From the sequence record MN871453.1: DNA of 64,000 nt. One strand, 5' to 3'. This document shows, piece by piece, positions 18,391-40,815 of the stretch (the stretch's first letter is position 1; each line of letters begins with the position of its first letter). The notes under the pieces are model-generated. The model made no database searches. It was not told the origin of the DNA and saw nothing but the letters and a program-made list of their open reading frames with translations. The translations under genes were made by a program, and so were the position numbers.

Positions 18391-19096
18391 TTTTAACCTC
18401 GTTATACGCGTTGTTTACCGCCACCAACGTTTTGCTTACCGCTTCATTGTCTCGGAGGGTAAGCGGCCAGCTAGGATGCATGTTGATGTAATATTCGTTC
18501 TCGCCAGGAGCGAAGTCAATAAAGAATTTATGATCAACGTTCACTTCCGCAGAAAGCCGATTAATGGCGATATTGTAATGAACCCGACACCCTGCTTTCT
18601 CCCCAATTGATTTTAGTTTGTCTGGGTTGATTAATGGGTTGTTTAAGAAGGACTCAACTGTCCCTTTAAACGGGAGAATATTCATTTCGCCGTTAGAGGA
18701 ATCCGTCGGTCCGCGATACAGTTTAACAGCATCCTGACAATACTCTTCTACCCGATCGCAATACGTCGCAATCAACTCTTCAGGTACTGTCGAGAGTTTG
18801 TCAGTGAGTTTATCAATCAGTACCGCGGTATCGGCTTCATCTGACCGGACCATGACCATCGGAAACCATTTATTCAGTAGACAGAAGAAACGGGGGTCTA
18901 CGCCGTGATTAACGAGGTAAGAAACGAATTCAGTGGTAGCGATCCCCGCTACCCAGCCGTAGGGCTTAAAGGTACCAGGAGGAGCCCATTCTTCATCAGA
19001 CCAAAAGTCACGGAGATGAACCTCATCCCTTTTTAAACGCTGAATAAAGAAAGTGAACTCCGGTTTCTGGTTCAGGAAACGTTCGATGAGTTGCAT
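18380..19096 (-). CDS. hypothetical protein
   Basis: ORF in operon. Confidence 0.65.
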   Translation of the reverse strand: MQLIERFLNQKPEFTFFIQRLKRDEVHLRDFWSDEEWAPPGTFKPYGWVAGIATTEFVSYLVNHGVDPRFFCLLNKWFPMVMVRSDEADTAVLIDKLTDKLSTVPEELIATYCDRVEEYCQDAVKLYRGPTDSSNGEMNILPFKGTVESFLNNPLINPDKLKSIGEKAGCRVHYNIAINRLSAEVNVDHKFFIDFAPGENEYYINMHPSWPLTLRDNEAVSKTLVAVNNAYNEVKNAH

Positions 19097-19578
19097 GGTT
19101 TGTCCTCGAGATGAAAACGCAGTTTAAAGGTAGGGAACGGTGCAGGTTCATCTGAGTGAATGAGCGGTAACGAATCAATGATTTCGATCCTTACTGCTTT
19201 CAGATTAAACCCGATTAACACTTTAAAGTCCACTAAGGCATTAATAAAGGTGGCCGTAAAATCGGTCTTTAATACGGTATTAGAATTGTCAGGGTAAATC
19301 GTATCATTGACCAATATCTCAAATTCTCTTTCGACAGGTTCTTTTTGATCGGATGAATCCACAAGGCGTTTAACTGAGAGCAGATCGACTTTGGTCAACA
19401 CTTTATTTTCGGGGATAAGGTGTTTGAACTTCTTAATTCGATCGTCAGTAATAATCAGATCGAAGAACGGGTAATCGGCTGTTTCAGTTTGTTTTTCGAC
19501 CAGTCGCTGAATCTCTTTGACTTTAACAGTGTCGGAAGCCATACTCCCTAATACGCGTTTGATATCGTCAATTAACAC
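19072..19578 (-). CDS. hypothetical protein
   Basis: GTG start, AAGGAG RBS, follows early promoter 19613-19621. Confidence 0.7.
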   Translation of the reverse strand: MLIDDIKRVLGSMASDTVKVKEIQRLVEKQTETADYPFFDLIITDDRIKKFKHLIPENKVLTKVDLLSVKRLVDSSDQKEPVEREFEILVNDTIYPDNSNTVLKTDFTATFINALVDFKVLIGFNLKAVRIEIIDSLPLIHSDEPAPFPTFKLRFHLEDKPCNSSNVS

Positions 19579-19621: not shown

Positions 19622-19662
19622 ACTTGAAAACAAATCCAAAAGAAAAAAGAGAACATAGAACC

Positions 19663-37479: not shown

Positions 37480-37490
37480 GTCATAGAAAG
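37480..37490 (-). promoter_or_regulatory. late promoter (CTTTCTATGAC)
   Basis: TATG core upstream of virion gene. Confidence 0.65.
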
Positions 37491-38320: not shown

Positions 38321-38331
38321 ATCATAGAAAG
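38321..38331 (-). promoter_or_regulatory. late promoter (CTTTCTATGAT)
   Basis: TATG core. Confidence 0.6.
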
Positions 38332-38419: not shown

Positions 38420-38632
38420 ATGAACTATTCAATCATTCCCACCACAGCGCAAAAGATTGTTGAGATTACCCGCAGTAAAATTGACCCGAATGCGGTCACG
38501 CTCATTTTCGAAGACGGGGCAAACGAAACATTTCTGGATTGGTTTGTCCAGAAACATAAACCAGCAATCGGTCGTTTTCTGGCCAAAGACACCGACGGTT
38601 TCCTGCACGTAGTAGACACGATCGACGCTTAA
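38420..38632 (+). CDS. hypothetical protein
   Basis: Ends at bidirectional hairpin 38641-38673; WF..KHKP..G...D.DG pattern. Confidence 0.65.
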   Translation: MNYSIIPTTAQKIVEITRSKIDPNAVTLIFEDGANETFLDWFVQKHKPAIGRFLAKDTDGFLHVVDTIDA

Positions 38633-38640
38633 AAGAACAC

Positions 38641-38673
38641 AGAAAGGAAAGGGGTTAGTCCCCTTTCCTTTCT
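38641..38673. terminator. bidirectional terminator
   Basis: 14-bp stem between convergent genes. Confidence 0.75.
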
Positions 38674-38917
38674 AGTCTATATTGTTTTTCAGGATGTCTT
38701 CGGCAGGGTAGAAATGATCTTCTACGATTTTACCGAATTGATGGGCGCCAGTGAGTGCGTTTTCTACGGGGGTGATGTAAGCGGCTTTATTGTCCCACGG
38801 CGGGAGAAGCTCTGAGAGCAACAGTGCGGCTTCGTTTAATAAAGCTAGGTTCTCGTCAGGGACGAATGATATTGTCTCTTGTAGGCTCTCTAAGAGCGCT
38901 ATACGGGGAGTAAACAT
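38672..38917 (-). CDS. hypothetical protein
   Basis: Convergent on the same hairpin; AAGGG RBS. Confidence 0.6.
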   Translation of the reverse strand: MFTPRIALLESLQETISFVPDENLALLNEAALLLSELLPPWDNKAAYITPVENALTGAHQFGKIVEDHFYPAEDILKNNID

Positions 38918-38935
38918 AGTTGACCCTTAAAGGTG

Positions 38936-39053
38936 AAATAAGACAGGGACCGAAGTCCCTGAACTTATAAATTAAAATGAATGTCTCGTTATTAACCGGC
39001 ACTGTGAGAAACGGTTAAATAGGAGTAATCGGAGGGTGTCTTATTTCCTCTTC
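38936..39053 (-). ncRNA. candidate early small RNA or structured leader (~118 nt)
   Basis: Promoter 39060-39068, no ATG ORF, cUUCGg terminator, 11-bp pairing of 5' and 3' ends. Confidence 0.4.
38944..38961 (-). terminator. intrinsic terminator, cUUCGg loop
   Basis: CAGGGAC-UUCG-GUCCCUG-UCUUAUUU. Confidence 0.7.
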
Positions 39054-39059
39054 ACACTT

Positions 39060-39068
39060 GTAATATAG
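39060..39068 (-). promoter_or_regulatory. early promoter CTATATTAC-N5-TG
   Basis: Contains the exact phiKZ early 8-mer TATATTAC. Confidence 0.75.
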
Positions 39069-39087
39069 ATGTGAAAAAGAATCGAGA

Positions 39088-40815
39088 TTAAGTAATTTTC
39101 ATCCACCAAATATCATTAATAAAATTCCCATCGATATCGGTGGTGGTAGTATTAGATCCCGACCCTTTCAAAACAGTACCTGGCATAGTTTTAATCTTTC
39201 TTGCACTTGCAACGGACACTGGTGGTTGAGATGGAATATAACCGATTTTAGGATCGGTAATATTAACATTGGTGCACGTTCCTGCTAATTGCACGGCGGC
39301 AGCGGCGGCTGTAATGTCAGCTGCTGACCATACTTGTGAAAAAGCAACAACGTTAGTTAAAACAGTGGCTGCTTTACTGTAATTGACCGTGTCTGTTATA
39401 GGTTTAAGAATATTTAAACCGTCATTATATCTGGCGTAATAGACCGAGTCCTGAATAACTAATCGAGGAACTTCACCCTGTAACAACGGGAAATTATTAT
39501 TACTAGCGAGATATTTACTGGTTCGAGAAACGGTGTCAATAAAGACGCAGTTCCTGACCACATTGTTGTAATTAATGTTACCAGAACGAATGTTGGTGCA
39601 ATAGTCGTAACCGGAAGAAGGATATGGTAATCGTTGAATACCGTCATTGAAAAAGAACGAAAACTCAACAACATTGTTACCTTGGCCATTCCTTCGATCG
39701 TAGAACCATTGCGCCTGTGTATAAGTGCCGGAATAGGGGGCGTACGCCGCTCGTGCTCCACCTTGTACACTTGTAGAAGAATTGCCCATAAATAGAATCG
39801 AGGCGCCATTGTTGAAGCCAATGATATTTCTTGCCACCGAATCCCACGTACAGTAATCAAAATCAATGATTTCATTATCGGTAACCGAAGGGTGCATACC
39901 ACCGCCGAAAATGTTTTCAATCATGATTCGATTACAACGCCATGTCCAAAACCCCGCATCGGCATATAGCGTTTCAGTGTTCTCTAACGCGTTATCCCAT
40001 CGGTATTTTGAATACGTAATATTCCGCATGACTGACTGATATTTGTCCACAACGTAGGCGGAGTTTAAAGACTCCACGCCAGCAAACTGACAGCCTCCTT
40101 TTGAGATTCCTGTCATCTCAATATTCTCTACTTTGACCCCGCGAGAATAATACGTCCCTTTAGAGTTGTCAGTAATATCATCTGCTTTCCAATGGTTCCC
40201 CACGATGTTAATGGATCTCGCTACATTGAAAAATGAAGAATTTCTGACACCAAAAACATTCGCCCTATTTGTGGCGGCACCATCTAAACGTATATTGACG
40301 GCGGAATCATAGTCTTTATGATTTCCGCTTCTGCCAATCGGATCGCTAATAAATTTACAATTATCAATCCATACGTCGACATCAGTTTCCACAGTTACCG
40401 GTGGCAATTCAAACCAAATAAAACAGCTACTGTTATTATCGACCGAAACAAGATTGTTTCGGGCATAAAACTCTATTCCGCTGACGGTAACGCTTTGTAC
40501 CTTACGTGCGGTCAAATGCATTGCACGATAGCTATACCCATCGAGCGCAGTGGCAGCTTTAAAATAGTCTGTGTTAATCCATTTTGGTTTTGGTCCAGTC
40601 CCATAACTTGTAATATAAGACATGGTCCCCGTTGTGTTGTACAAAGAGGTTAAGCCAAAATTAACGTTCTCATAAATAGTTGTCCCTGCTTTTAGTGCAA
40701 TAGTACAAGGGTGACTGAAACCTTGTGCAATCAATGCAGAAAACGTTTTAAATGGTGAGTCTTTTGTCCCCGTACCGTTCACTGATACGGTAGGATCAAT
40801 GTAATAATAGTTCAT
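39088..40815 (-). CDS. beta-helix protein without an anchor domain (putative depolymerase)
   Basis: Begins YYYIDPTVSVNGTGTKDSPFKTF; Asn-ladder beta-helix repeats. Confidence 0.7.
   Translation of the reverse strand: MNYYYIDPTVSVNGTGTKDSPFKTFSALIAQGFSHPCTIALKAGTTIYENVNFGLTSLYNTTGTMSYITSYGTGPKPKWINTDYFKAATALDGYSYRAMHLTARKVQSVTVSGIEFYARNNLVSVDNNSSCFIWFELPPVTVETDVDVWIDNCKFISDPIGRSGNHKDYDSAVNIRLDGAATNRANVFGVRNSSFFNVARSINIVGNHWKADDITDNSKGTYYSRGVKVENIEMTGISKGGCQFAGVESLNSAYVVDKYQSVMRNITYSKYRWDNALENTETLYADAGFWTWRCNRIMIENIFGGGMHPSVTDNEIIDFDYCTWDSVARNIIGFNNGASILFMGNSSTSVQGGARAAYAPYSGTYTQAQWFYDRRNGQGNNVVEFSFFFNDGIQRLPYPSSGYDYCTNIRSGNINYNNVVRNCVFIDTVSRTSKYLASNNNFPLLQGEVPRLVIQDSVYYARYNDGLNILKPITDTVNYSKAATVLTNVVAFSQVWSAADITAAAAAVQLAGTCTNVNITDPKIGYIPSQPPVSVASARKIKTMPGTVLKGSGSNTTTTDIDGNFINDIWWMKIT

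Follow-up and report, generated by a model that had tools for sequence, protein, structure and literature searches.

In a jumbo phage of Klebsiella, a small early transcription unit seems to be nested within the late array of tail-fibre genes. We consider it somewhat better than an even bet that a structured early leader with a leaky terminator gives rise here to an RNA of ~118 nt and to a read-through mRNA for a gene of 81 aa. How would such a unit work? The injected virion RNA polymerase would use a phiKZ-type early promoter, begin near G39053 and transcribe a leader with one hairpin at its 5′ end, another at its centre and an A/U-rich linker, and would then meet an intrinsic terminator at +93 to +110. 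The majority of transcripts are expected to end at this terminator as the ~118-nt non-coding RNA, while the rest would read through into the 81-aa gene and end at a bidirectional terminator at 38674-38640. Late in infection, the intrinsic terminator would also end the tail-spike mRNA, and thus the element would be the 3′ UTR of that mRNA as well. The unit as a whole would be an attenuator-type leader that keeps expression of the 81-aa gene early, low and insulated from late transcription, with the short RNA as its abundant product. It is to be noted that we infer the start and end points, the share of transcripts terminated and any role of the short RNA.

The phage and the layout of the unit

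The window, that is, the whole stretch of 64,000 nucleotides analysed, matches the Klebsiella jumbo phage record MN871453 (299 kb) with 100% identity and unchanged coordinates. Its identity to KpLz-2_45, an annotated phage of the genus Siatvirus, is 99.9%. MJ359 and LPKP23 are more distant, followed by FBKp24 (Maaswegvirus) and Centimanus at ~70% DNA identity. FBKp24 forms a nucleus and has genes for a nuclear-shell protein and for a tubulin (bioRxiv 10.1101/2021.03.02.433402). The window's own genome contains a homologue of the nuclear-shell gene as well as genes for subunits of a phage RNA polymerase, and from these together with the relationship to FBKp24 the window phage can be regarded as a phiKZ-like, nucleus-forming jumbo phage. 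Searches of IMG/VR (by pattern and by protein), metagenomes and GTDB genomes for further relatives returned only known phages and chance matches, and the latter were rejected by the covariance model. A tblastn search with the 81-aa protein led to 13 phage records, all of the same known phages. Public sequencing runs that hold DNA of the element do so as low-depth, DNA-like contigs. In one of them, a wastewater run (X16), a 464-nt contig from a relative spans window positions 38518-38981 with 11 differences, two of which fall at 38934-38935, the end of the U-rich tract described below.

All features listed in the original prediction were found in place by direct reading of the minus strand, on which the whole unit lies. 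Upstream is the tail-spike gene (39088..40815; phrog_16942), whose stop codon occupies 39090-39088; the syntenic gene of FBKp24 is annotated as a beta-helix tail fibre. The early-type (virion-RNAP-type) promoter, assigned from its motif family and conservation, follows at 39053..39080. It consists of a T-run at 39078-39074 (-25 to -21), the core CTATATTAC at 39068-39060 (-15 to -7), an N5 spacer at 39059-39055, and TG at 39054-39053 with the predicted +1 at G39053. Neither reading nor the terminator scan found a terminator between the tail-spike stop codon and this promoter. Late transcription of the tail-spike gene continues through the element, whose terminator should bring it to an end.

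The predicted non-coding early RNA of ~118 nt extends over 38935..39053, both ends being predictions from sequence. The 5′ hairpin SL1 of the RNAalifold consensus (39032..39050) pairs GAGG at 39050-39047 with CCUC at 39035-39032 around an 11-nt loop, and a pyrimidine stretch, CCCUCCGAUUACUCCU, is read at 39036-39021. The central hairpin SL2 (38985..39025), seen in single-sequence and consensus folds, has a 7-bp core (39018-39012 / 38998-38992), a 13-nt loop and outer CUC/GAG pairs. The intrinsic terminator hairpin detected by the terminator scan (38944..38961) has 7 bp, five of them G-C, and a UUCG loop. A U-rich tract with 6 U in 9 nt (38935..38943) comes after it, and reading and the terminator scan place the predicted 3′ end at about 38937-38935. 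This ~118-nt segment also forms the beginning of a longer leader, of 136 nt, that belongs to the 81-aa gene (38672..38917), whose ATG is at 38917 (+137). Finally, a strong bidirectional terminator with stems of 14-15 bp on both strands (38640..38674) closes both the unit and a convergent 70-aa gene at 38420-38632 on the plus strand. This 70-aa gene has no family match, ends at the bidirectional terminator and carries a CTATG motif ~35 nt upstream of its start.

The 81-aa gene itself is, by sequence comparison, real and conserved. It has the same length in all relatives, and its protein is 59% identical in the deep comparison with FBKp24 and Centimanus. The protein belongs to no PHROG or Pfam family, and a single-sequence fold gave an all-helical model of low confidence (pLDDT 60). 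As had been proposed, the gene lacks a promoter motif of its own: the 27 nt that separate its ATG from the terminator contain neither an early-type nor a TATG-type motif. The leader of any mRNA for the 81-aa protein therefore has to include the terminator hairpin, and this obligatory hairpin makes the unit an attenuator-type leader by its architecture.

An early-type promoter among late-type ones

The promoter had been ascribed to an early class, and the comparison within the genome agrees with this. Sites of the form [C/A]TATATCAC-N5-TG number about 18 in the genome, all on the minus (gene) strand and each with an upstream T-run. The sister genome has 15 copies of CTATATYAC, every one of them on the gene strand. 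As an exact octamer, TATATTAC shows no enrichment in the window (3 copies, versus 2.2 expected). The T variant in the promoter noted originally is a minority form of the family, and FBKp24 carries C at the site. Judged from this distribution, the promoter family is a real one. Copies lie directly upstream of the nuclear-shell gene and of a gene for an RNA-polymerase beta subunit. Both of these proteins are products of early genes in phiKZ. Thus, the temporal class of the promoter would be early, a class that is taken from the function of the genes behind its copies.

The early promoter at the element is kept in FBKp24, Centimanus, MJ359 and LPKP23. Its closest paralogue in the genome according to blastn is the promoter of the nuclear-shell gene, and the similarity continues into the first ~20 transcribed bases. 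The architecture is also that of phiKZ, whose published early promoters consist of a T-rich element and an extended -10-like box (PMC8244752, PMC7598289), the T-rich element lying upstream of about -19 (PMC8244752). Likewise, the element's promoter has an AT-rich box near -10, repeats on the gene strand and a T-rich upstream element, and TATATTAC is strand-biased in phiKZ, with 33 forward and 9 reverse occurrences. No sigma-70 promoter was reported at the site on the minus strand.

The surroundings of the element are of another kind. In both the window phage and FBKp24, the sequence before nearly every tail-fibre gene contains a terminator, then a T-run and then TATGA. These TATGA-type candidate late promoters lie 25-45 nt before start codons, as at window positions 37488, 38329 and 47696 (minus strand), and the same arrangement is seen upstream of FBKp24 gp301-gp312. 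The motif agrees with the consensus of phiKZ late promoters, TATG (PMC7598289). The early promoter of the element thus sits among tail-fibre genes that bear TATG-type late motifs. The downstream genes of 109 aa and 135 aa have the late-type motif at 38329, and the 81-aa gene is the only gene behind the early promoter.

Some other arrangements of these motifs were observed in the course of the comparison. A 168-aa gene (19072-19578) is preceded by a tandem of a TATG-type motif and an early-type promoter (window positions 19660 and 19621, minus strand) and may be continuously expressed, which has been described for AR9 and for PHIKZ054. At window positions 6590-6548 (minus strand) and at genome position 100577, the U-run of a terminator doubles as the T-rich element of the next early promoter, forming compact terminator-promoter cassettes. 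The early promoter at genome position 263945 has a small ORF directly behind it (about 263800-263885, minus strand), ahead of a DprA-like gene; its product starts with MSDLLDLL and ends in an acidic run, and the start is conserved in FBKp24.

A conserved non-coding leader

Does the transcribed stretch encode anything? No ATG is present between 39053 and 38918, in agreement with the earlier claim that the segment has no ATG ORF, and no plus-strand ORF crosses the stretch. The sole listed ORF begins with a GTG at 39002 and would give 48 aa; it lacks a ribosome-binding site, and in FBKp24 it breaks off after 12 codons. A small peptide was ruled out as a product, as there is no start codon and a 1-nt indel carried by the relatives breaks the frame. 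By these features of its sequence, the stretch is non-coding.

Nevertheless, its sequence has been kept. The first 75 transcribed nucleotides are identical to FBKp24 at 65 of 75 positions (87%) and to Centimanus at ~92%. The linker before the terminator cannot be aligned in the deep comparison (FBKp24, Centimanus), so conservation runs 75 nt beyond the promoter and ends before the terminator. In the 81-aa gene, synonymous sites are saturated against FBKp24 (pS 0.97, with pN 0.28). Within the window phage's own lineage, the 146-nt unit has 2-3 differences, versus ~11 expected from a pS of 0.077. Between FBKp24 and Centimanus, 7 of 127 element positions differ, which is close to the neutral pS of 0.071; with the window as outgroup, five of the seven differences can be placed on the FBKp24 branch, and these leave all predicted pairs intact. 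On the strength of these comparisons, the element is judged to be under long-term purifying selection. It is not uniquely conserved among early leaders. Although four other early leaders in the window, taken as controls, are only 52-67% identical, the nuclear-shell leader reaches 87% between the same two phages, the window phage and FBKp24, and the leaders at genome positions 229748 and 195255 reach 75% and 68%.

Can this conservation be explained without any function of the RNA? It could reflect the needs of the promoter together with a downstream homology arm used in exchange of tail-spike cassettes. MJ359 and LPKP23 have other tail-spike genes, and yet their homology to the window begins at ~39098, at the tail-spike stop codon, so that the element is the first conserved sequence downstream of the swapped cassette. 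The likeness of the first ~20 transcribed bases to those at the nuclear-shell promoter would also fit. However, the conservation reaches too far beyond the promoter for this and stops before the terminator, and the 10 differences from FBKp24 in the 75 nt are scattered and leave no patches of identity. Such scattered differences argue against recent exchange, and thus long-term selection would still be needed. We regard this explanation as very improbable.

If it is the RNA that matters, its structure deserves attention. The minimum-energy fold has a z of -3.55 against shuffled sequences. It includes the 11-nt complementarity between the two ends (39047-39037 with 38945-38935) that was a central point of the original prediction, and the complementarity is exact. 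The chance of finding one of 11 nt in a single RNA of 119 nt is ~0.002-0.01, by a rough estimate that multiplies ~7,000 position pairs by 4^-11. But the end helix is not conserved. Four of its 11 pairs are broken in FBKp24 and Centimanus, leaving six contiguous ones, and one is broken in MJ359, in no case with compensation. The consensus fold comprises a weak SL1, SL2 and an extended terminator, and in it the partner of the U-run is the neighbouring A-rich stretch and not the 5′ end. The internal 7-bp stem, on the other hand, is exact as predicted and forms the core of SL2, in which 100% of the alignment cells are paired. SL2 shows one change from G-C to G-U and no double change, and substitutions specific to FBKp24 keep or extend its helix. 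All four pairs of SL1 are invariant, and SL1 is therefore neither supported nor contradicted. Outside the terminator, covariation support consists of fold-compatible changes only, as assessed over two deep lineages only.

Other early leaders of this phage also open with 5′ hairpins, and these are kept by compensatory changes between the window phage and FBKp24. They are L049:44640-44705 (the nuclear-shell leader), L049:31166-31240, L050:15663-15733 and L047:247-375. Structured 5′ ends thus appear to be a general trait of the phage's early transcripts. In three of these leaders, a hairpin followed by a U-run is found at +8 to +40, and they may be promoter-proximal attenuators. The early leaders of the nuclear-shell gene, of the RNAP beta gene and at genome position 229748 share the promoter family with the element and resemble it in the 5′ hairpin near +1, in some cases again with a hairpin and then a U-run. 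Their length is 26-90 nt, and their hairpin falls within +1 to +40. Among the early leaders, only the element combines a strong terminator, preceded by a conserved domain of ~90 nt, with a position amid late genes.

Is the short RNA, then, a regulator acting in trans? Hfq-type sRNAs with C/U-rich seeds mask Shine-Dalgarno sites, and the original prediction favoured such a function on the basis of tracts resembling an anti-Shine-Dalgarno sequence. The C/U-rich tracts or loops could pair with ribosome-binding sites of the host or the phage, or titrate an RNA-binding protein early in infection. The element is like Hfq-type sRNAs in its size, its 3′ terminator and its C/U-rich single-stranded tracts. 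Its stand-alone layout from promoter to terminator, the A/U-rich stretch beside the terminator hairpin, the invariance of CCCUC and the high conservation of primary sequence in the 5′ 75 nt, as expected for a seed or a protein-binding site, speak for this possibility. The C/U-rich stretch is indeed present, but its likeness to the 16S tail comes down to two short C/U-rich tracts, and both vary among relatives: CCUCC reads CCUCG in FBKp24 and Centimanus, and FBKp24 has ACUCUU in place of ACUCCU. The invariant CCCUC is predicted to be paired with the 5′ GAGG. The target search in the phage genome found a longest complementarity of 12 nt on either strand, versus 11-14 nt for shuffled RNAs, so that no target there stands out from chance. 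In this the element is unlike Hfq-type sRNAs, as it is in its U-tail, which is short and not continuous. Masking of ribosome-binding sites in the phage thus lost its support, and a trans-acting sRNA in general seems to us a quite unlikely reading of the element.

The terminator and the fate of early transcripts

The terminator is the feature for which the evidence of structure is the clearest. The original prediction had pointed to a cUUCGg terminator at 38944-38961; the consensus scan finds this hairpin too, and three of its pairs are changed on both sides in relatives with pairing kept. The homologous site is annotated as a terminator in the FBKp24 record. In the alignment, 92.5% of cells are paired in the terminator helix, and 96% over SL2 and the terminator together. 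FBKp24 and Centimanus have a longer U-rich tract than the window phage, with a higher share of U. Compensatory change of this kind indicates that the hairpin is a real intrinsic terminator.

Which polymerase obeys it? It might be an insulator specific to one polymerase: the virion polymerase would read through and express the 81-aa gene early, and the terminator would act on the late polymerase alone, so that tail-spike transcripts end there and the 81-aa gene is silent late, and no short RNA would accumulate. A terminator is needed at the end of the tail-spike gene in any case, the 81-aa gene has no other promoter, and stopping of the early polymerase at the hairpin is itself only inferred. 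Against this, several other early promoters within early regions have a terminator hairpin immediately before them, which suggests that early transcripts obey such signals. The insulator would also leave the conserved 75 nt unexplained. All in all, we find it a poor candidate.

That transcription can end in this way within a leader is known from phiKZ, in which 17 candidate short RNAs derived from 5′ UTRs by premature termination have been described, two of them confirmed by northern blotting; the examples include RNAs of ~71 nt upstream of PHIKZ221 and of 141 nt upstream of PHIKZ302 (PMC10914365). The layout of the present unit is the same in its sequence, namely a promoter, then a terminator inside the 5′ UTR, and a product of <250 nt. 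Like the element, the phiKZ short RNAs occur in a phage group with two phage-encoded multisubunit polymerases, have a start followed by an intrinsic terminator within 250 nt inside the 5′ UTR, lack an ORF and are conserved in sequence among relatives. In particular, the element contains no ORF of at least 10 codons with a Shine-Dalgarno site, which is a criterion applied to the phiKZ RNAs. There are also differences. Direct reading places the short RNA of PHIKZ221 behind a TATG-type motif, whereas the element lies behind an early-type motif, and the phiKZ RNAs were mapped experimentally while the element is known from sequence alone. The covariance model finds nothing in phiKZ (best E 0.2), and thus the element is not a homologue of the phiKZ short RNAs. 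Nor was a paralogue detected within the genome: blastn finds only another copy of the promoter, and the best genome match of the covariance model (28.5 bits) proved to be the end of a gene with its terminator. Taken together, the unit probably makes a short early RNA of the kind already seen in phiKZ.

In the classical transcription attenuators of bacteria and phages (Merino and Yanofsky 2005, cited in PMC10914365), a terminator separates the promoter from the start codon, and only transcripts that read through it express the gene behind it. The element shares both properties, but it lacks a leader peptide as well as an identified antiterminator or a known effector, and its terminator also ends an upstream late operon. 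An attenuator leader had been offered originally as an alternative to the sRNA. It fits the architecture, the gene at 38672-38917 being without a promoter motif, but no convincing conserved antiterminator came to light. A leaky terminator alone, however, does not explain ~75 nt of kept primary sequence.

Could the 75-nt domain be a sensor? It might respond to a ligand, a protein, or the state of translation or transcription, and switch the terminator in the manner of a riboswitch or of protein-dependent antitermination. The order of parts is riboswitch-like, with a conserved 5′ domain, a fast-evolving linker and terminator, a ribosome-binding site and the gene. When the FBKp24 and Centimanus sequences are folded in truncated form, the second pyrimidine tract is base-paired to the terminator's G-rich 5′ half, although these pairings are of 3-5 bp and are seen in those two phages only. 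On the other hand, an Rfam search at E up to 10 gave only noise, with no match to a family or an aptamer. No conserved, mutually exclusive antiterminator was found, the candidates in the window having only 4 bp, and the two deep lineages provide no covariation for an alternative fold. We hold a conditional switch of this type to be improbable.

More broadly, the 75-nt domain may be a riboregulator produced by the injected virion polymerase in the first minutes, before the nucleus is formed, that acts in trans or as a terminator-switching sensor. We regard this as unlikely, though worth keeping in mind. We know of no nucleus-forming phage for which a riboregulator of either type has been shown. 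The leaky attenuator-type leader remains our preferred reading of the unit.

What does the unit tell us about these phages? To our knowledge, the tuning of early genes in nucleus-forming jumbo phages is poorly known outside phiKZ. Such phages transcribe with their own polymerases, and the unit is a clean, conserved case of promoter, leader and terminator in a Klebsiella phage group that is therapeutically relevant. For this group, two promoter classes can now be defined by sequence, the early [C/A]TATATCAC-N5-TG and the late T-run followed by TATGA. At present, the unit is an addition at the level of annotation and not a new mechanism. If the short RNA is made, it would serve as a probe for whether virion polymerases obey intrinsic terminators, and for whether leader RNAs have functions of their own.
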